A DNA stretch of 62,987 bases, counting the filler, from Hyphochytrium catenoides (taxonomy: Eukaryota > Protista > Hyphochytriomycota): the NCBI GenBank assembly GCA_900088475.1. It is 8 parts of 8 records of this genome, joined end to end, with 100 filler letters (N's around TTAATTAATTAA, not from the genome) between each part and the next. Parts side by side here need not be neighbours in the genome. Positions count along the whole stretch, not along the records: positions 1 to 17,592 come from FLMG01003773.1; 7 more parts are not named here. One strand, given 5' to 3'. The translations under genes and the position numbers were made by a program. Each line of letters starts with the position of its first letter. The stretch's first letter is position 1. The notes under the pieces were generated by a model. The model was given only the letters and a program-made list of their open reading frames with translations. It made no database searches and had not been told where the DNA came from. Of this stretch, positions 3,563 to 17,592 are shown in pieces.

Positions 3563-4961
3563 TTGCTTAAAAACTAGAAAGTCGAAGATGGAGAGTAGAG
3601 AAGCGATGAGCCCAAGGAACAGAGGAAGAGAGATGAAGGACAATGAACAGGAGGAAAGAGTTTTTTTGGCACAGACAACGACCTACTTGTATAGAGAGGA
3701 TGAGGAGATTGAGAAATGGGCTGAATGTATTGAAAAGAGTCAATCGCGCTTAACGTGCCAAAGCCACCTTAACATCTTCTCCTTTCCCGCTCTTCCGCTT
3801 CGCCGCTTGCCGACAGGATGGAAGAAAAGGCGGATTAGCCAGCGGGGGAGAGGCAAGAGAAGGGAGAAGCCGGAACGGCGCCGAGGAAGACGAACAGATG
3901 CGGAAGAAAAGAATAGAATTCTACAACGACATCTAGCTAATAACTGTTCCCAAGACAGCCAAGAGGCCTAAAGCGGCGAGGTGGAGAAGATGAGGAGACT
4001 GCCAGAACTTTTGCCACCAGTCAGGAAAGACTGCGAACTGAGAAAGAGAACGATATCGTACCCGTATGACCGCCTAATTCCTGCTCTGTAGAGCGTAGTA
4101 GAGCCACTATCCCGCACTGTCTCAGATTTCTGGCTCTAGACGGATGCCATCTTCAGGACTTTATCTGTCTCTTGTCCTTCTTTTTAAAACGGAGTAGTTC
4201 TATGATAACTTAGATGAGTAGTACAGGGCCTTTGTTATTACCAGCCTTACTGAGGCAGTCCTCTAGCTAACGAATAGACAGGGAAGAAAGTATGGAAACG
4301 GATGAGAACAGGTTCTAATGAGAGAGAGAGAAGAAACAAGAGGAGAGCCGGAGACAATGGAAGGAGAAGGAGGCGGATGCAGGAGTCGTTCTATAATAAG
4401 AAGAGAGACAAAGCGGCTGGTAAAAGACAGCATCGCTTCCGATACTTTGGTTCACACTGCAGACGCCGCAGGCCCCGCTAAGCCGACTATAATCCGTTGC
4501 AAAAGAATAGCGTTCGCCGGTTCCGAGGACAGACTTGTGCTAAGACAGAAACACCGGTGAGAAAGTTGAAGAGTCTATTTGATGCTACTACCAGGACATG
4601 GGTATCGCCTTGTGTTTACACTTCTGCTGCAGGGTAGAGTTAATCAGCTGTCCTGATATGTGCTAGGTCTTCGTTTCCGCTTCTTGCTGTTGCTGCCGTC
4701 TCTACTGGGAGAGGGCCGCCGCCCATCTGGATCTTGGCAACATTGTGGAATGTATGAGAAGAGCAGTCTCTGTCGACGATAATGACGGCTTGAGACGTTG
4801 AAGGAGCAGTTCTCACTTGGCTATGGGTAGGCCAGCTAACTTCATCCTTCGCCTTTGATGGCTTCCGGGCATCACTCTCTCCATCCCTACTTCTTCTTCT
4901 TCTTCTTCTTACTGTTGCCCTACATCCTTGCCTACTGCTCCAGCCTTCATGACCTTCTATT

Positions 4962-6629
4962 ATGGTGGCAGCCTCCTCATCCCGTCTGACAGTTTGCCTC
5001 TGTCCAGGTAAGGCGACACCTACTGGCACGCAAAGGCGAAGAGACAACCATGATCCTCTTCTTGCGATCATGATGGCGGATCAGTCAACAGCAAGGCAAC
5101 CGTCCGCGACACCTTCTTCGTCTCCCATCATGTGCAAGGCCACTACCAGTCAATGGGCAAGTTTGAAGTCAGCTATGGCGACAGGGCATATGAGCCCATT
5201 GAAAGTGGGAGCGCTCCCTCTTTGGTGTAGAGGAGGAAAAGTCGTCGCGCCACTTATAATCTGCCTAGCTCTTCTGTTGCTGCTAGTTGACGGCCTGCCA
5301 TACTTACGTGAAAGCTCTAATAACGGAAACAACGACTACTTCCATTCCGTCTCACAGCGCTTAAGCTCGATTGTCGACGTGCTGGGTCTTTCTCGTCAAG
5401 GACGAAGCAGGATTGTGGACCCTTTGGGGTCAGTGGACACTGGCGACCAACATCTTTGGCGGGGCAGCCTTGATTATACGCTCCTCACTACCCCTAGCCC
5501 GACATTAGAAGAGCATCATGCATTATCGTCATCATCCAATGATGGCAAGGCCAGCCAAACAGGAGCCTTACTATTGACAAAGAGGCATTTGATGATGGGA
5601 GCTATTAGTCGTACTGGTGGTCGAGGTGCTGTCATTGCCCCTGCGGCTCTTCATCCTGCCCGACCCGCTGGTCACTTGCGTCGTGGCGACCGTAACGTGC
5701 GGGCTGCCGCCGCCAACAAGCAGGCACCTCCTACGGTTTCCGCAGTGTCAGAGAGCACAGGCAGGCGGACGTTCCTCGGAAAGCTTGGTCTAGCATTCTT
5801 AGCGGTAAATGGCGGTCCCGCAGTGTTACCACCGTCTAAAGGCTATGTTATAGCGGCAGAACCAAAGAGCCTACAAATGGCTATCGCCATGGTCTATCGG
5901 ATCCTAACTGGATACACCGGCAGCGGACTGGAGAGAGGACCCGTGGAGTACAGATCTAAAGAGCTATATCTCAAAGGGAAGGATGGGAAGCTGACGTTCA
6001 TTAACCCCAGTCTAGCCGAAGGAAACTGTGCCAATTGCGCTTTCGCTGAAGCAGTAATGCTCGTGAACGAGCCAGGTCGTACCGCGAGGGCAATCCCTTA
6101 CGCTACTCCTGAGATGTCCTTCTTATCAAATGTCGTTAGAGACTTTGGAAGCACGTTCGGGTTTGCTGGCGGAGCCAAAAGAGACTGGAGAACGCCAACC
6201 TACCGATTAACCACCTCGCTGTACGACAAAGGCAATAATCCTAGCCGCTGGCAAGCGTATGAGAAGCAATTACTCCGTGTCATGAAAAGCGGTCAAATAG
6301 CTCTCGTAGCTTCCGGAGCAACAGATGGCTCTGTACGCGTGATGGGCCATGCAACCTTAGCTGTCCGTCTTGGTAACTTTATCGTCCACATTAACAATCA
6401 GCGCTGGACCCACTCGTTCAGCAGTTTTGCAGAGTTTCTTCGCATTTACTCTGAAGCTTCAAAAAGGAAGCTTGAGACCACCAGCGCCTTCAACCCAGAG
6501 GAAGCAGTCACAGGTCATGATATCTTCGTCTTGGGCATGCCCATCAATCCGCTGCATTATAGAAATGAAATGGCTGGCATGGTGCCGCGTAAGGAACAGG
6601 ACCCGTCCGACCTCTTTTATCCTAAGTAA
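4962..6629 (+). CDS. Protein with hydrophobic signal, transit-like region, twin-arginine motif and C-terminal papain-fold (Tox-PL/glutamine deamidase-like) domain
   Basis: 555-aa intronless ORF (true start may be ATG 5070 or 5175); VVAPLIICLALLLLLV; GRRTFLGKLGLAFLAV..VIA/AE; INPxxxxxNCANCAFA ... GHATLAVRLGNFIVHINNQ. Confidence 0.7.
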   Translation: MVAASSSRLTVCLCPGKATPTGTQRRRDNHDPLLAIMMADQSTARQPSATPSSSPIMCKATTSQWASLKSAMATGHMSPLKVGALPLWCRGGKVVAPLIICLALLLLLVDGLPYLRESSNNGNNDYFHSVSQRLSSIVDVLGLSRQGRSRIVDPLGSVDTGDQHLWRGSLDYTLLTTPSPTLEEHHALSSSSNDGKASQTGALLLTKRHLMMGAISRTGGRGAVIAPAALHPARPAGHLRRGDRNVRAAAANKQAPPTVSAVSESTGRRTFLGKLGLAFLAVNGGPAVLPPSKGYVIAAEPKSLQMAIAMVYRILTGYTGSGLERGPVEYRSKELYLKGKDGKLTFINPSLAEGNCANCAFAEAVMLVNEPGRTARAIPYATPEMSFLSNVVRDFGSTFGFAGGAKRDWRTPTYRLTTSLYDKGNNPSRWQAYEKQLLRVMKSGQIALVASGATDGSVRVMGHATLAVRLGNFIVHINNQRWTHSFSSFAEFLRIYSEASKRKLETTSAFNPEEAVTGHDIFVLGMPINPLHYRNEMAGMVPRKEQDPSDLFYPK

Positions 6630-8789
6630 TGATAACAATCACCCCTTACTTTTTATCGCCACGGTTGTCCATTCAGTAGTGATATGATGCTAGCACTTCG
6701 GATCATCTGTGTGCAAGAATGGCCGTGCTTCAGAACAGATTCACACAGTGGAAGTTCAAAGCTCATATGGCTGCGCAACAGCACAGATAGATTGGCGCCA
6801 CGCAGCTGTACTTCTCCCTTTACTCCTCATAAAGATGGGATAGTAGACGGTTTAATGCTGTTACTCCTCATAAAGAAGCTAGATGGCGGCGATCGGTTGG
6901 TTAGCTGAAGGCAGCCAGAGCAAACTCAGAATCTTGTGGGACTATTGGACGGGGAGGAGGAACTGCTAGCTACGGCTTGCTTGCCTATGGCTTTTTGAAG
7001 AGATGGCACCAAGGAGGGAGTGATGATGATGATGAAGGCCGGTTGTCGAGTCATAGAGAGGAAATAATGATGGCCATGGCTTAGCGTTAAGTGTCTTCGT
7101 CAGTGGAGATACGCTTAGTTCAAGCACCAGGGAAAGAAAACCATGGCCTTGAACCTAGCCCCTGTACCCCTTATGACTTTCCTCCTCGACGAGCTGGTGT
7201 TGATGGCTCTCTCCCTTGTTGTCTTCTTGCGGAGGATCTCCTTGTCAAAAACGCCCGTGCCCTTCTGGGGTTTGCGCTGGTCCTTCCTCGGCACCTTACT
7301 TACCTCGCTCCACTACGTTTTTTAGACTCCTCTGCCTCTGACCGGCCCGAGCATCAGGCGGAACCTACCGCTTATTATATTGGCTCTGTTGTCGGTCTCT
7401 ACATTCATTGGTGGCTGCTCGGAGGGCTCGACAACCCTTTGCCGGCATTGCACTCAGTGACTCTGCAGAGTCATGAACCTGAGTCTTATTAGGCGTAGCA
7501 CATAGATCTTCCACGCTTTACCTGTCCATGTTAGCCTCTTTATACGCATCTCTCCGCCAGGATGAGGCCTTGTGATGATGCGGCCGTTGCGATGTCAGCG
7601 GACCTTTTGTCATGCCTGCCTTCTTCGAAAGAGCAGTAACCAAGACGGTGCCTTCTCATGATCATTATGCTCCTTCTTCCTTCTCTCCTATCATCATATG
7701 ATACTATAGAAGCCGCCTCTGCATCATAAAGGCCTCCAGGCAATGTGGCGGCAGCAGGAAAGCGGTCAGCCTTTGAAGAGGAGCTGCTGCTCCCAAAGAC
7801 GGTTGCTGGTGGTGCTACTGCTGACACAGGAAGAAGGAACCGCTCTAGGCTGACGATGGTGTTAGACGAGGACAATCAGGTTGGGACAGTAGCGGCAGTG
7901 CTTCATCATCAGAGGTAATGCTACGAATATCTCCTTCTTTCTGCACCGTCATCGCACTCGTGAACGACCGTAATGCTAAGAGTTTTCTCCTGTTTCTCAG
8001 CACTTTGAGCTTCCCGCCTTCACTTTTATAATCCCCAGGCTAACCCGCCGTCTAAGCAACGTTTGCCGCGGCTCTGCTGCTCGCACGCGGCTATATCTTC
8101 GTGCTACTATGCCTAAGGCTCAGCTCCATGACTCTTCTGCCCGTTAGTCTCTGCGAAAGCTAGCGTACTAGGCCAACTTCCTTCCACAGTCAGGATAGTA
8201 GAAGATCAACAGGATTAGGCCTTCCCTTGAGACCAATTGCCTACGAGGCTGTGGACTGCAAAGAAAGTTCTCCGGCGGGGCGGCAGGAGGAACGTCGATG
8301 ACATTCAGAGAAGTAGAAGGAACACAGAGGCAGGTGGAGACGAGGCACAACTAGAGCAGTTTGAAGAAGGTGCCAGATAGATCGACGAGATGTACGCAAG
8401 AGATGCTGGGCTGAGATGATGCGGGCAAATGAGCAGCCACTTCGCGAGATTCCTTCACCTGCTGCTCCTTGCTTGCTGGTCCTCTTCTCCTTCCCTTGGG
8501 CGTGATGTCAGCGTTGGTCTTTGACGAGGAGCCATATCGGTCCTTCGCTTTGGAAGATGGGACAGCAGGAATAGAGGAGAAGGAGGAGAAGGATTGCGAT
8601 TGCCGTGCAACCTCTACTATCGGGCGACGCTGTGATGGATGAGCTGCAGAAATGCGGTGCTCATCATGCTTGCACAACCCCGTCTTCCTCATGCTTGAAA
8701 AGCATCATCATGAGAGGTGTTCCCCCGCGGTATAAGCGGGACCTGTGCGGCGCTGAGTGGAAGAAAGGCCAAATAACTTGGCGGTGATG

Positions 8790-9640
8790 TCACGCGTAGC
8801 TCTTCTTCCTCTATCTTGCTTCGAGTGCTGGGAGCTGGGATCCTCTTGCCTGTGAGCAAGAGCACTGGGATCTGGATGCGGCCCCCAAGGAAAGCCGTGG
8901 ATGATGAACTTTCTTGCCTTCTATTGTGCGTCTGTTCCGGATGAGACCTCCTCCATATATTGGAAGGGCTTGAGCAACAATGCCGAGGTGGCGCTCTCGC
9001 CACTTCTGATTGTTGATGAACACAATGTAGTCCTTGACCCACGACGCCATCAGGGTATACTGCCCATAGCTAGCCACCTTCTTCCCTCCTTTACTCTCAT
9101 GAAGATGATAGCTAGCTGGTCATCTTTCGTCGTCCTCATTAGCAGTGCCTGCGTGACCCTCTGAACCCTTTCCTCGAGGGAAGAGGAGCTGGTGCCCATC
9201 CTTTTTGAATCACTTCACCAGCTAATCGCGGTAGCTGAAGGTGCTCGTCAAGATAAAGAGTGGATCTCAGTGAGTGTGCTACGGCGTACGCCATATTGCC
9301 ACAGTTCCGAGAGCTGAGTATGGCATCTCTCTTCTACGATACTGACTCTCCGCCTTCTCTTCTCACCGGAGCAGCCATTGGGACCCGTGACGAGCCACCA
9401 GATTAGCTCATTGGCGCCAGCGTCACTGCTTATCCCACTGGTCATCAACTTCTTCGCCATCCACTTCTTTGCGAGGTTTTAAGCCACGTTCGGAAGCTTT
9501 CCGGGTTGGTGGTGCCCTCGAAGGCATTCAACACCATCTTCAAGGATAGCAACTTCGTCGACGAGCAGGCGTGGCTAGTGCTCCTCCGTCCTCACCGTTC
9601 AGGATTGTCTCAACCAGCGCTACAAAGTTGTTGAGCCGCT
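8790..9640 (-). pseudogene. Degraded paralogue of the 4962-6629 papain-fold domain
   Basis: Fragments NFVALVETILNGEDGGALATP, QALLMRTTKDDQLAII, TLMASWVKDYIVFINNQKW are collinear with NCAFAEAVMLVNEPGRTARAIP, KQLLRVMKSGQIALV, TLAVRLGNFIVHINNQRW; frameshifted. Confidence 0.6.
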
Positions 9641-11239
9641 TAGCGTCATCCTTAGACTCTTCCCGTTTGAGAAGTTATCTCAGCCGCTGCATAACTTTTG
9701 CTGTCAGTGGTCGTGGTTGCTGGGATTTTTAAGGGGATCGGAGGATGGAGCTGTCATCACCTCCTCTGCCTCTCCCTCGACCTCGCTCTAAAGCGTCTTC
9801 GCAGCGACGAGCTCATCAAGCAAGAGCTTTGCATTCTCTCCCAATAATCATTATTATGCGTAGCGACATCTATCACCGCCGCGAAGGAGAGAAAAGTCAC
9901 CTTCTTCTCCATGCCTTGGCCTTAATTCTCACTGGTGAATAAGGCTCGTTCAAACATGTCTGGAGCTGCCGGCTGCCTCCCGTCAATGGAGAAGAACTAA
10001 GAACGACACTGGGATCCGTGCCTGAGAGATGCCCCGAGCGCTAAGACGGTAATCGATCTTCACAGCGTAGTTTGATAACATCTTAAGCGTTGAACCGCGG
10101 TTCGCTCTGTCTCGCAGTGGCCACCACTGCTCGGGTTTGAGCACCAGTAAGCCCAATCATAGTCTTCCGGTTTGCTTTGATCCTTGGTTCTGGTGACGCT
10201 GCGGAAGAAGGATAATGAGGTCATTGAGCGCAGGCTCGGGTTTAATCAAGAGTGTGCCACGGATCGAATCTGCAGACTGATTTCTGGAGCCGCAATAAGC
10301 TCCAGATATCGACCGACAGACACGGATAACGAATATGCTAATAGAAGTAATCTAAGCAACTGGCAGCGCAACAGTCAGAGAAGCCTCCTTACAGCTTCAA
10401 AGCCGAAAGTCTAGCGAGCGGCCTTCAAGCAGGAAGGAGCATGTCTAGGCTTAACAAGATAGAGCTAAATTTTGACTGATTCCCACTGCGGGCTGCTTGT
10501 TAGCTCCTTCCCCCTGGTGCGCCTACACATCTATCATAGCTTCTCTCTCGCGCACGCGTGCATCTCCTCGTCTCTTGCTGCTCTTGCCTACATCCCTACA
10601 TCTTCACGTACACTACTCTACTGCTTCAATACACCTGCCTTATCGCTCTGCTGGTCTTCACATTTGAAAGGGAGCTCTCTTCTTTTGGTCATACTGCTTG
10701 GCTCCCTAGCTGACCTCCTTACCTTCTGGCCGCTCCCATTCCCAGGCTTGTTCCTGCTCTTCCGTTGACGCGCTGGGAAGGTCCAGCCATCTCCAGTTAG
10801 CGTGAAAGAATGGCAGATCATAATAATCGAACATCAGCTAGTTGTCAGAAGCTTCAGAAGGCCTCGCCGATGCTTCAGCCCAGATCTCTTGCTCCAAGGA
10901 GGAAGGCGCTCGCCTACGAATAATAAGGTACAAGCCACACGCTGTCAGCGCTATAAAGGAACCAAGGATGCCAGCTAAGTCAATTCATCGCACGCGACAG
11001 TCTGCTACCGCTCCTCTTTCTTCCCCATCAAGCCCTCGGCGCCCTATGCCTTGTTTTCCGCTTGCAGCGCTGCCATCCGTCCTCTTCTTGCTCTTCTAAG
11101 TAAAAGACTTCTAGGCCATCGACAGCTGGCTCTGACACTACTATTCTCAAGGGTAGGGACATCGTCCGGCGGACGAACGAAGCTAGAAGTCGCGGTTATC
11201 TTCTAGCAATTTCCTCCCTCAAGCGTAATCTCTCTCCCG

Positions 11240-11259: not shown

Positions 11260-11305
<46 letters not shown>

Positions 11306-11395
11306 CTCTCTCCTCTCTTCTTTATTCTCTCTTTCTGTCTCTCTCTCCTCTCTCTTTCTACCTTAGTCGTCCCTCCCTCTCGCTCTCCTCTTCTC
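11240..11395. repeat. (CT)n microsatellite
   Basis: Direct inspection. Confidence 0.9.
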
Positions 11396-11909: not shown

Positions 11910-12335
11910 TTTGCTGTGGTGGCTGCTGCTTCTTCTGCTAGCTGCTCCTGCTGCCAACAACGCTGCGGTGGCTGCTTCCTACTGCTGCCTGATGCTGGTG
12001 GTGGTGGTGCCGCCAGTAGTGCTGCTGCGGCTGCTGCTGCTTCTGTGTGCCGCTCTCCTTCTTGTTCCTGCTGCTCTTCTTGTTGCTTGCTGCTGCTCCT
12101 CCTGCTGCTGCTGCTCCTGCTGCTGCTGCGTGCTCCTGCTGCTGCTGCTACAGCAGCCCAACAACAGCTCCTGCTGCTTGCTGCCAATAAGACAGCCGCT
12201 TCTCCCTACTGCCTGATGCTGCTGGTGGTAGTGCTGCTGCTCCTCCTGCTGCTGCTGCTTGCTCCTGCTGCTGCTGCTTGCTGCCAACGCAGCCGCTTCT
12301 CCCTACTGCCTGATGCTGCTGCTGCTGCTGCCGCC
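11910..12335. repeat. (CTG/CAG)n tract with embedded degenerate minisatellite unit
   Basis: ctgccaa..cagccgcttctccctactgcctgatgctg recurs at ~11951 (degenerate), ~12181 and ~12282 between CTG runs. Confidence 0.85.
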
Positions 12336-12522: not shown

Positions 12523-12594
12523 GGTTCTATGGTGTAACGGTTAGCACTATGGACTCTGAATCCATCGATCCGGGTTCAAATCCCGGTAGAACCT
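12523..12594 (+). tRNA. tRNA-Gln (anticodon CTG)
   Basis: 72 nt; acceptor GGTTCTA/TAGAACC, D-arm TGGTGTAACGGTTAGCAC, anticodon stem ATGGA-CTCTGAA-TCCAT, T-arm CCGGGTTCAAATCCCGG; followed by CCA and a T6 Pol III terminator. Confidence 0.97.
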
Positions 12595-13354
12595 CCATTT
12601 TTTGGGGTTGACTTGACTCCTATTTTCAGGCTGTGTTTGTTATACGGCAAATAAATTTTATAAAAGTAACACTACTACTAAGGATAAGGTTAGTTTTACC
12701 ATGCCATAAAATACTAATATTTAGATATATTTCTCAGTTCAATAAGCCATAAAAATGCTAAAAGTTATTTCTCAATTCAATAAGGAGCTGCTTTCTTCCT
12801 TTTTTGTTCGCTGTTCTGGCCTGATGTGAGTCCTTACTAGTAGTTTTCGCTCTTGTTCTTCTTGTTTGTTGGACATTTTTCATATCTTCTGTACTAAACA
12901 GTAGTCTACTAGTGTCACACCTTTATAATCATTGCTCGTTAATAAAAGGCCACATTTCTTTTTCGAAAGAATAGATAAGGCAAGTCAATAAACAGAATAG
13001 CTAGGGCAAGTACTGCTACTTTTACTCACCCAAGTCCGTACGTATAGATTCAGTAAATTCCAAACTAGATCCATAAAAACGATCTCGTTTATTAGACTAT
13101 TCTAATAAAACCGTATATTTTCCTGTGGACTGCCTTTCTATTATATTGCACGCTTCCTCTCTTTGCTGCCCTTCTACTCCCATCTGCTCCTCTCATCCCG
13201 CCTGACTCTGAGTCCTCCTTCTTTCTGCACTGACTCTACCTCTCTTCTTCTGCGTCTTATTTGATTCTGGTTCTCTCTTCTTTATCTCTTATCAGTTTTT
13301 TATGGAAATTTGTTGGGCATTTAATTAGTTAACGCATTGGCTATGGCCCTACTA

Positions 13355-14862: not shown

Positions 14863-16470
14863 ATGAGACAGCGGAGAATGCGATCCGCGATTTTCTTCTC
14901 GCCTTGTCTGTCTTTGTTTGCTGTACTACTACTAGTACTGCTGAGTACACGGAGATTCCCTGTCCAGGCTGGCGCAGGTTTCTCGCTTCCTCGCTATTCT
15001 AGCGACTCTTGGGTCCTAACAAATGACCCGCCGGCCAAGACACCAAGCTTCCGTTCAGATTCCTCATCAGCGACGGCAGATTCGGTTGCTTTCGGGAGGA
15101 CAAGCAGACTTCCTGCAGACCGCCCGAGAAGCCCCAAGGCTGGTGGTGATGTAGATTCTCCTGCCCCCGGATCAGAGTACTCTTCGCGTGCGCATGTCTT
15201 ATCTCTGACTTCACAGCTTCAAGACGTCTTACTGCGCTATGGTGAAGACAAGGTCATCATACCTGGGCAATCCATGCTCAGAGATATCTTTGAGTTCAAG
15301 AGAAAGGTTCAGGACTCACTAGCTGCTGCTTCTCAAGAGAAGATGGCTGAGAAGCAAAAGCAAGAAGAGCTCGGGAAGGAGCTAGCTGCCTTGGAGGATC
15401 ACGTGACACAGAGACTGATGAGCTGGGGAGGCTTTAGACGCGAAACTCTTTCCCCTGCAGCAATCGGCATACTCCGAGAGCTCCTTCCTTCCTACCTAGA
15501 TTCAAGTCTAGCTCTATTTGCAATGTCTCAGGCTGCTGATCAACGGTACGTTCTCAGAAAGGATCTTGGGGCGTACAGGACGTTTAGAGACTCTGAAAGC
15601 GTAGTAACCAATCGGGAGATAGCGCTCGAGTACCTGACAGACCCTGAGCTCGCAGGGTATAACCGGATGAACCCTATAGAGAGACTCGAGTATCGGAGGA
15701 AAACGCTTCCTTCCCCTGCCCTCGTCTGGATCTTCGACCAGGTCTATCGATCCTTGCTCAATCTCAAGCTACCGACGGAAACCGCGGAGGATGTGACATG
15801 GAGGCTCCATTATATGGAGCGGCAGCTTAACAGCCAACGTTCTCCGGTACTAGATGACCTTCTGCACCTTATGAAGCGGTGGGAGCCATGGGAGAAAGGT
15901 ACGCGCAAGGAGCTCCTCAACATCCATCCTTCCACAGACAAACAAAGTGTGAATCAGATGCTCGAGGACATGAACGTGTTTCTGAGAGAGACGGCACAGC
16001 TCATCAGGAGCACGATTGAAGATATAAAAAAGAGAAAGAGCCCGGAAAATCTGCAGAATGAAGCGACCACACGCGACAGCTTAGCTCTTCTGGAGAAAGT
16101 CGCGGCTCTTGTTGAGCTTGAGGCAGGTTTAAATGACAGGCTAAGCGTGGCATACTCGACCACCAGGGATGCACTGGAGAAATTTCAAGGGAAAGGATAT
16201 GGAAATAACCTTCTAGCAAGATGGAAAGACGAGGAAGAACGTCAGCGACGGGCGTCATTGTCACCTCAAGGCCCCAATAAGAATGAAGAAACAAGGCTCA
16301 ATGGCCTGCTGTTTCTCCATGTCTTTCTGGACGATCTTGTCTTCCCCGACCTCCATAGAATGCTGGACAGGCGAGAGAAGGCTGCTCTGCGCGGAGGCTT
16401 ATATTATAGCCCTCGGCCAGGGTGTACCTGGGACGTCCAAGCAAAGGATCTAATCTGTGGCGATGTCTGA
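14863..16470 (+). CDS. Hypothetical secreted, largely helical/coiled-coil protein
   Basis: Long intronless ORF; N-terminal hydrophobic signal (LSLFAVLLLVLLS..VQA); start ATG 14863 or 14878; no recognisable domain. Confidence 0.7.
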   Translation: MRQRRMRSAIFFSPCLSLFAVLLLVLLSTRRFPVQAGAGFSLPRYSSDSWVLTNDPPAKTPSFRSDSSSATADSVAFGRTSRLPADRPRSPKAGGDVDSPAPGSEYSSRAHVLSLTSQLQDVLLRYGEDKVIIPGQSMLRDIFEFKRKVQDSLAAASQEKMAEKQKQEELGKELAALEDHVTQRLMSWGGFRRETLSPAAIGILRELLPSYLDSSLALFAMSQAADQRYVLRKDLGAYRTFRDSESVVTNREIALEYLTDPELAGYNRMNPIERLEYRRKTLPSPALVWIFDQVYRSLLNLKLPTETAEDVTWRLHYMERQLNSQRSPVLDDLLHLMKRWEPWEKGTRKELLNIHPSTDKQSVNQMLEDMNVFLRETAQLIRSTIEDIKKRKSPENLQNEATTRDSLALLEKVAALVELEAGLNDRLSVAYSTTRDALEKFQGKGYGNNLLARWKDEEERQRRASLSPQGPNKNEETRLNGLLFLHVFLDDLVFPDLHRMLDRREKAALRGGLYYSPRPGCTWDVQAKDLICGDV

Positions 16471-16629: not shown

Positions 16630-17592
16630 GCTCTCTCTCTCTCTCTCTCTCTCTCTGGCTCTCTCTCTCTCTGGCTCTCTCTCTCTGGCTCTCTCTCTCT
16701 CTCTCACACACTCTCACTCTCTCTTCCTGCCCTTCTGTCTCTCTCTCTATCTGTCACTCTTTCTCTCTCTCTCCCTCTCACTAGATCAAGCTCGTTTTCT
16801 GGGCCACGCGCCTCTCTCTCTCTTTCTAGATGAAGCTCGTCGTCTAGACCACAAGCTTCTCTCTCTCTCTTTCTCCTCTTCCTCTCTTTTTCTCTCTATA
16901 TATATATTAATGCACGGAAAGCAGCGTTGGGTCCATGACTATGTGGGAGCAATGTATATGCTGCAGACGATCTATCTGTCTCGCCCTCTCACTCTCTTCT
17001 TCTTCCTCTTTTTTCGCCGCTTCCTGCTGTCTATTTTCACTCTCTGTCTCTCTCCAAGTGAGGAGAGTCAACTTCTTTCTTGGCGCTGTTAGAGGACGAG
17101 ACAACTGATGACCGGACTGCGCTCTTTCTCGGTCAGCGTCCGTCAGCAACCGTTGCCTGCTAATAAGAAGCTGATCAGGATTAGCGGGAAGGGAAATGGA
17201 ATGGAAGCACGGCTGACCTGCTCTCTCTCTCTCTCGCTCTCTCTCTTTGTTGCTCTCTCTCTCTCTCTCGTCTAATTTCGCTGCTTCTCCCTCTCTCTCT
17301 CTTTTTCTCTCTCTCTATTTCTTATTAGTTCTCTCTCTCTCTTCCTTTCTCTCTCTCTCTCTTCTTCTTCTCTCTCTCTCTCTATTTTTGCCTCCCTCTT
17401 TCTATCTGTTAGCACAATAAGGTCATCGCCTAAGCTCTATCTCGTACTTTGAAAAGAAGTCCACACTCTGTCTGCCTCTTTCTTCTATGTTTTCATTGTT
17501 GTCTATGCTTTTGCTTAAGAAAGAAGGTCAAGATGAACTTCCTCCTGGCTGTCCCTCCTCCATATGATGACTCTCTCTCTCTCTCTCTCTCT
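16630..17592. repeat. (CT)n-rich low-complexity region at contig end
   Basis: Direct inspection. Confidence 0.85.

Follow-up and report, generated by a model that had tools for sequence, protein, structure and literature searches.

A duplicated toxin-like papain-fold gene of probable bacterial origin in Hyphochytrium catenoides carries a twin-arginine look-alike behind a putative secretory leader

The window, by which we mean the whole 62,987-nt stretch of Hyphochytrium catenoides DNA analysed here (assembly GCA_900088475.1, eight parts joined end to end), opens with contig FLMG01003773.1, which carries one uninterrupted open reading frame (ORF) of 555 amino acids (aa) plus stop. The ORF encodes a long N-terminal leader followed by a papain-fold domain with catalytic-type Cys and His residues (Table 1). 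A preliminary description of the interval 5175-5865, that is, from Met72 to just beyond an AxA-like site, had read this leader as tripartite (hydrophobic signal, Ser-rich transit-like stretch and twin-arginine (Tat) signal) and had offered two explanations, a toxin-derived enzyme sent to the thylakoid lumen or a bacterial Tat peptide retained behind a newer eukaryotic leader. Met37/38 aligns with the first Met of a second full-length copy of the gene, located on contig C2328, and Met72 is kept there too. In the first 900 nt of both full-length copies, no stop codon occurs in the coding frame versus 10-17 in the other two frames, with 13-17 for the copy in the window; the leader is therefore coding.

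Table 1. Position of the ORF and of the parts of its product along the window.
Feature	Residues	Positions	Strand	Remarks
ORF	1-555	4962-6629	+	likely start Met37/38 (5070/5073); Met72 (5175) also conserved
Hydrophobic segment VVAPLIICLALLLLLVDGL	94-112	5241-5297	+	hydropathy, paralogue conservation
Low-complexity linker	113-210	5298-5591	+	23% Ser/Thr, 10% Asp/Glu, 40% identity to paralogue
Basic Ala/Arg/Gly-rich 'transit-like' stretch	211-262	5592-5747	+	net charge +7, one acidic residue
Tat-signal look-alike SESTGRRTFLGKLGLAFLAVNGGPAVLPPSKGYVIAA	263-299	5748-5858	+	RR at 5763-5768
Cys/His papain-fold domain	300-555	5859-6626	+	placed in the Tox-PL1 / SpvD / OspI kind

The leader is unusually long (~260-300 aa, of which ~190 aa lie between the hydrophobic segment and the domain side) and poorly constrained. 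Its hydrophobic segment is present as had been described: VVAPLIICLALLLLLVDGL has a mean Kyte-Doolittle hydropathy of 2.77 over 19 aa and is 63% identical in the paralogue. The flanks are basic (R, K) on the N-terminal side and acidic or neutral after the segment, which therefore fits a signal peptide or a type II anchor with the C-terminal domain on the lumenal or extracellular side. Hence, we infer that VVAPLIICLALLLLLVDGL is a signal peptide for the endoplasmic reticulum (ER) or a type II signal anchor. The basic stretch further downstream, which starts with the conserved Met212, includes HLRRGDRNVRAAAAN and HLRRGDRNVRAAAA; its counterpart in the paralogue is a region of ~80 aa free of acidic residues. 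An RGD tripeptide (HLRRGDRN, window 5682-5690) within this stretch reads HARLGLG in the paralogue, and is thus not conserved and probably meaningless.

Directly before the domain, STGRRTFLGKLGLAFLAVNGGPAVLPPSKGYVIA/AEP (residues 263-301, nt 5748-5864) combines the n-, h- and AxA-like c-regions of a Tat signal: STGRRTFLGK is followed by 18 uncharged residues and then by VIA/A, with a basic residue in the c-region. The RRxFL motif, hydrophobic core and AxA-like site of the preliminary description are thus all in place, and the peptide passes a TATFIND-like rule of our own writing (RR.F[LIVM] plus an uncharged hydrophobic run). In hydropathy, the core (1.46 over 19 aa; best 13-mer 1.78) is surpassed by only one other peak in the protein. 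Among random sequences of the same composition, the strict rule was satisfied in 0.036% when the leader (192 aa) set the composition and in 0.23% when the whole protein (555 aa) did, and a relaxed rule in 1.7-5%. Such a peptide is therefore unlikely in one given protein, yet several are expected per proteome. The arginine pair lies at residue 268 of 555 (231 from Met38), and not near the N-terminus as in a Tat signal. No stromal-type processing that might expose it there can exist in a host that has no plastid. In the AlphaFold (AF2) model, the stretch lies outside the fold, with predicted local distance difference test values (pLDDT) of ~28-31, and ends ~3 residues before it.

For the C-terminal domain, AF2 modelling from 13 sequences gave a predicted template modelling score of 0.74 with a core pLDDT of 80-94. 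In the numbering of the model, Cys95 starts a helix (94-107) and His202 lies in a strand (197-209), the arrangement of a papain-like fold. The corresponding residues of the protein are Asn355-Cys356 (Cys at 6027-6029), His463 (6348-6350) and Asn478-x-Gln480 (6393-6401). They follow the NC-H-DxQ signature published for Tox-PL1 (PMC3482391) as GNCAN, GHATL and HINNQ, the last of which reads HIDNQ in the bacterial relative P0005. Across the 13 sequences, Cys and His never vary, the Asn preceding the Cys hardly does, and HI[N/D]NQ is conserved. The Pfam profile PF15644 (Papain fold toxin 1, glutamine deamidase) matched over nearly its full length (profile positions 2-111 of 114) at a score below the threshold (14.4 versus 24.1 bits, E=0.08), and the bacterial relatives P0002 and P0006 are likewise sub-threshold matches.

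Structural comparison pointed to the same group of enzymes. Almost all of the top 50 structural neighbours are papain-fold Cys-His enzymes, among them SpvD (Z 8.7), AvrPphB (8.3), YopQ (8.1) and OspI (6.5), together with staphopain, C39 peptidases, SpeB and CHAP-type lysins. The tool regards Z 7-8 as common, and Z-scores of 8-9 as of a frequent size where a model has no clear Foldseek match; the weight therefore rests on the uniformity of the neighbour list. In a protein-language-model search, 19 of the 30 nearest clusters were PF15644, and SpvD, YopQ and OspI were recovered as well. Sequence searches of the PDB gave nothing beyond noise, in the form of designed 'Cake' repeat proteins and of FCP proteins, and no true PF15644 member was found in 131 genomes of the phylum of the bacterial relatives. 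On sequence signature and model, we assign the domain to the Tox-PL1/SpvD/OspI branch within the papain superfamily, where it forms a rare and divergent subfamily, and predict an enzyme with peptidase, deamidase or cell-wall amidase as candidate chemistries. With Tox-PL1 (PF15644), SpvD (PF05563), OspI (PF21435) and YopQ it shares the papain-like fold, the Cys at the N-terminus of a helix and the His in a beta-strand, together with the NC...H...[D/N]xQ pattern and the C-terminal position in exported bacterial proteins. It differs from them in its sub-threshold Pfam score, in the Asn that most members carry instead of Asp at the third position, and in its bacterial relatives, which are Oligoflexia-type lipoproteins.

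These relatives are few. An exhaustive profile search of 1.84 billion representatives returned only seven proteins (E 4e-10 to 5e-5), six of them full-length with bacterial lipoprotein signals and the seventh a fragment. Two word-index searches with the domain gave no matches, and a third, alignment-based one added only P0008. Exact-sequence look-ups found no match for the protein (six alternative starts), the neighbour ORF, the paralogue or three mitochondrial proteins. Together with an ORF at locus L009, the six search matches and P0008 make up eight full-length bacterial relatives, all of which open with a lipoprotein signal (LLAAC, GGAAC, FFAGC and others), carry the shared module at the C-terminus and hold a 200-250-aa module between the two. 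Only one of them, P0006, uses Tat: its N-terminus, ..WIRRTFLAALTILSTGAAGC, is a twin-arginine lipoprotein signal with the same RRTFL. Genomic copies were found in metagenome-assembled genomes (MAGs) of Oligoflexia and Silvanigrellaceae amid ordinary bacterial genes, and at these loci neither a type III, VI or VII secretion system or RHS context nor an obvious immunity gene was seen.

Two of the bacterial sequences carry features of their own. In P0007, residues 102-211, N-terminal of the papain-fold module, resemble a glucosaminidase (PF01832; 25.2 bits, below the cut-off of 30.2); this fusion is an architecture typical of peptidoglycan hydrolases and a lead to the substrate. At locus L010, from a MAG labelled Pseudomonadota, the homologue (4929-6100) occupies two overlapping frames, 4929-5843 and 5729-6100, as the result of a frameshift or of faulty assembly. 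The gene after it (6366-7481) encodes a lipoprotein with a sub-threshold bacterial SH3 domain and a GHIALIG...IYHNNW pattern that recalls the same Cys/His module, which hints at a cell-wall-directed function of the neighbourhood.

The relation of the hyphochytrid gene to these proteins is restricted to the domain. When the eukaryotic pair was compared with eight bacterial members by hhalign, the catalytic core between PSLAEGNCAN and ..IYSEASK aligned at 99% probability (E=5e-18). The domain is ~25-30% identical to its bacterial relatives. The placement of the h-region by MAFFT had suggested an inherited internal bacterial segment (GNFIIET..G.G.L.R), a candidate that we rejected because the hhalign match is confined to the catalytic core. 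No eukaryotic or viral orthologue appeared in the profile search, the word searches, the metagenome scans or the viral scans; relatives are confined to bacteria, as is seen for horizontally acquired genes. The 1668-nt ORF is intronless, in a genome whose genes have on average 3.64 introns and exons of 228 bp (PMC5795050). Its 17.6-kb contig is eukaryotic in character, with microsatellites, a tRNA-Gln, and host-like GC content overall and at third codon positions. Three loci plus allelic copies, and a long low-complexity leader in two paralogues, place the gene in the host genome and not in a contaminant. In the tree, the four eukaryotic copies form one clade (support 99/98) on a long branch, while their position among the bacterial sequences and the rooting are left open. 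Transfer from a bacterium to a hyphochytrid, followed by duplication, would be the economical reading of these patterns.

The full-length paralogue on contig C2328 (569 aa) is 65% identical in the domain and 40% in the leader, and the leader has no further relative in the host genome. Common to both copies are the first Met (= Met38), Met72, the hydrophobic anchor, Met212 and ESTxRRT, and as ESTxRRT is present in both, the core is older than the duplication. At the Tat-like region the C2328 copy reads RRTHVEPLKAASLAREDG / DRRTHVEPLKAASLAREDG, and the residues after the arginine pair, THVEPLKAASLAREDGSAMAP, are charged and form no hydropathy peak. Thus, the twin arginines are kept, whereas the hydrophobic core is not. 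The paralogues agree at RR268-269 and R208, while the residues around these sites have drifted. For the paralogue pair, dN/dS is 0.84 over the Tat-like stretch, versus 0.66 for the leader and 0.42 for the domain: the Tat-like stretch evolves nearly neutrally and the leader is weakly constrained. A third, more divergent domain paralogue (35% identity) occurs at positions 12-626 of two near-identical, edge-truncated contigs, C2511 and C3968. Both contigs break at the same point inside the gene, so that the N-terminal part, from which the state of the RR and the h-region might have been polarised, is missing; they probably represent two haplotypes of a diploid assembly.

H. catenoides is a free-living, osmotrophic, non-photosynthetic stramenopile in which no relic plastid genome was found, and its published assembly comprises 4758 scaffolds plus one mitochondrial record (PMC5795050). 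We searched this genome (61 Mb, 4759 contigs including mitochondrial DNA (mtDNA)) in six frames with hidden Markov models (HMMs). No light-harvesting proteins (PF00504), PsbA/D (PF00124) or PsbP (PF01789) were found in the whole genome, and neither TatC (PF00902) nor TatA/B/E (PF02416) was found in the genome including the mtDNA. The same procedure recovered Sec61/SecY at E=5e-75, and the search method therefore works on this genome. Contig C4759 (48,127 bp) is a gene-rich mtDNA with cob, nad1, nad11, nad6 and many ribosomal protein genes, and carries the only small-subunit ribosomal RNA detected in the genome, which is of the bacterial type; the published mtDNA is a linear 48,124-bp fragment without rps7 and TatC (PMC5795050 supplement). 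The host is without a thylakoid and without a Tat translocase, be it of plastid or mitochondrial type. A mitochondrial Tat pathway was ruled out because TatC and TatA were not found and the mtDNA is reported to lack TatC.

At positions 9019-9659 (minus strand), the mtDNA contig also holds a set of overlapping ORFs whose repeats are rich in Pro, Gln and Phe (PPQFPPFPQLPED). They do not resemble normal mitochondrial genes and may belong to the six unassigned ORFs of the genome paper's supplement.

These observations bear directly on a functional tripartite leader, in which ER signal, transit peptide and Tat signal would deliver the enzyme into the lumen of the thylakoids in a complex plastid. 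The order of the elements does mimic that of lumen-targeted proteins in complex-plastid algae, and a (-3,-1)-compatible site, VDG/L, is available, at which cleavage after Gly111 would give Leu at +1, a residue tolerated by ASAFind-type rules. However, the host has no plastid genome, photosynthesis or Tat genes, even though the Sec61 control worked. The leader itself fits poorly as well. While its Ser/Thr content and the basic residues 211-262 bear out a transit-like character in part, residues 111-210 contain 10% Asp plus Glu, too acidic for a transit peptide, the leader extends over ~190 aa and the paralogue has not kept the h-region. The preliminary description had made thylakoid targeting depend on a plastid or Tat machinery in the host and on conservation of RRxFL in paralogues. 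Neither our HMM searches nor the genome paper revealed such machinery, and in the paralogue the arginine pair stands before a charged stretch in place of the hydrophobic core. We consider lumen targeting refuted and a working tripartite leader barely credible. The motif, the 18-residue core and VIA/A are those of bacterial and thylakoid Tat signals, whereas here they are internal and stand in a host without TatA/B/C and thylakoids.

If the RR peptide is not a working Tat signal, it may be the remnant of one. The donor gene would then have encoded a Tat signal joined to the domain, an upstream eukaryotic signal or anchor would have been added later, and the old Tat peptide would now be an internal, decaying linker, which can still be made out in this copy but has worn away in the paralogue. 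Several findings are consistent with such an origin, which would be compatible with our best explanation of the gene. The relatives of the domain are bacterial only and exported where full-length, one of them through an RRTFL Tat lipoprotein signal (P0006); the peptide is unstructured and sits at the domain boundary; all three parts of a Tat signal are present, at a chance of 4e-4 to 2e-3 per protein; and the ESTxRRT core predates the duplication. In contrast, the signal adjoins the domain in none of the eight full-length bacterial relatives, only one of the eight uses Tat, and the hhalign homology stops short of the Tat-like stretch. In addition, a near-neutral peptide should have been erased, given that the domain itself has diverged to ~25-30% identity on a long branch. 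Because the peptide is nearly unconstrained, survival of a fossil would need both an unsampled true donor and a recent transfer. Of the second claim of the preliminary description, a bacterial peptide retained behind a eukaryotic leader, the bacterial exported relatives, the single RRTFL match and the boundary position stand, while no adjacent signal was found, homology is limited to the core and chance is a comparable explanation. We regard a fossil as a serious candidate that falls well below an even chance.

Coincidence would account for the same peptide if a basic, Ala/Gly/Leu-rich linker had come by chance, in one paralogue, to contain RRTFL and a mildly hydrophobic run after it. Per protein, the rates given above (1.7-5% relaxed, 0.04-0.2% strict) predict several such peptides in a proteome, and the present case was selected out of a very extensive scan. 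The paralogue without an h-region, the near-neutral evolution and the lack of homology to bacterial sequence at this place all agree with a chance origin. Less easily explained are a motif this complete (S/T-RR-x-F-L-x-K, 18 uncharged residues, Pro/Lys and VIA/A), its location right where the domain starts, and the descent of the domain from exported bacterial proteins. Overall, a pure look-alike is quite possible, if somewhat short of an even bet.

Present roles unrelated to Tat, by dibasic pro-peptide processing or as a presequence from a downstream start, are together unlikely. Fungal secreted toxins are often made as dibasic-cleaved precursors, and the conserved dibasic sites KR208, RR241 and RR269 could likewise be cleaved in the secretory pathway to free the mature domain from a pro-region, which would account for the conservation of RR and make the hydrophobic run incidental. 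RR268-269 and R208 stay invariant amid drifting surroundings, in line with a prepro-enzyme. However, islands with six of seven residues conserved are by our own estimate expected several times in a 40%-identical leader, and no kexin/furin P-domain (PF01483) was found in the genome; we hold this processing to be improbable. A start at Met211/212 would instead yield a bipartite mitochondrial signal (intermembrane space or inner membrane), possibly with dual localisation. Met212 is invariant between the paralogues and residues 211-262 have a net charge of +7 with a single acidic residue. Yet the 210 codons upstream are open and alignable in both paralogues, and hence coding, the paralogue has no hydrophobic sorting segment and the mtDNA lacks TatC, leaving this reading very improbable.

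Taken together, we favour, at a probability of roughly 0.7, an intronless, bacterial-derived and duplicated toxin-like enzyme gene with a eukaryotic secretory leader and an inert RR peptide. The C-terminal half would be a papain-fold Cys-His enzyme of the Tox-PL1/SpvD/OspI kind, taken from bacteria and then duplicated, to which a long, fast-evolving N-terminal extension would supply one strongly hydrophobic segment. This segment would direct the protein into the Sec61 route and thereby bring the catalytic domain into the ER lumen, hence outside the cell or onto its surface. From a start at Met72/77 it would act as a Sec61-dependent signal peptide, from Met37/38 as a type II signal anchor. The ~190-aa linker may serve as a fast-evolving disordered stalk or pro-region, within which the RR peptide would be an unstructured element that either descends from a bacterial export signal and is now decaying or resembles one by chance. 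It is not a working Tat signal, because the host has neither a Tat translocase nor a thylakoid. Predicted secreted proteins make up a low proportion of the H. catenoides proteome according to the genome paper (PMC5795050).

Five points weigh against this explanation. The PF15644 score of the domain is sub-threshold, and the structural Z-scores are of a commonly seen size. The start codon, the cleavage and the secretory routing are suggested by hydropathy and paralogue conservation. The quality of the Tat-like peptide exceeds chance for a single protein, which 'inert' does not explain unless the peptide is a fossil. Finally, the tree leaves the direction of transfer unproven.

The closest parallel may be found in ticks, whose 'dae' domesticated amidase effectors are reportedly a bacterial papain-superfamily domain acquired by a eukaryote. 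Like the tick genes, the hyphochytrid gene appears to be horizontally acquired, is intronless and duplicated, and has a hydrophobic leader of eukaryotic type. It differs from 'dae' in its toxin family, in its hyphochytrid host and in its leader, which is ~260-300 aa long and poorly constrained. One extension of our favoured reading is tentative: RRTFL could be a genuine fossil of the export signal of an Oligoflexia-type donor, and the enzyme could now be a secreted weapon or digestive tool against bacteria, a combination that we find doubtful. If true, the fossil would be a snapshot of 'leader replacement' during the eukaryotic domestication of a bacterial toxin. Independently of this, an apparent anomaly is removed, as no toxin-fold enzyme needs to be assumed in a thylakoid lumen. 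The gene would represent a lineage-specific uptake and duplication of a rare bacterial papain-fold toxin-like family by a free-living 'pseudofungus', and, if its product is secreted and active, it would extend the short list of bacterial toxin domains that eukaryotes have domesticated and provide a first handle on an uncharacterised enzyme family.

Elsewhere on the same contig, a second long intronless ORF occupies 14863-16467 on the plus strand. Counted from the first Met it encodes 535 aa, which open with a signal-peptide-like sequence, MRSAIFFSPCLSLFAVLLLVLLS; it matches no Pfam family, and the genome holds a single copy. Two long single-exon genes for secreted-looking proteins thus lie 8 kb apart in a gene-poor, repeat-rich stretch. 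A tRNA-Gln(CTG) gene (12523-12597, plus strand) directly follows a ~310-bp (TGC)n array (12020-12331), and (CT)n arrays are located at 11263-11359, 16631-16779 and 17221-17383.

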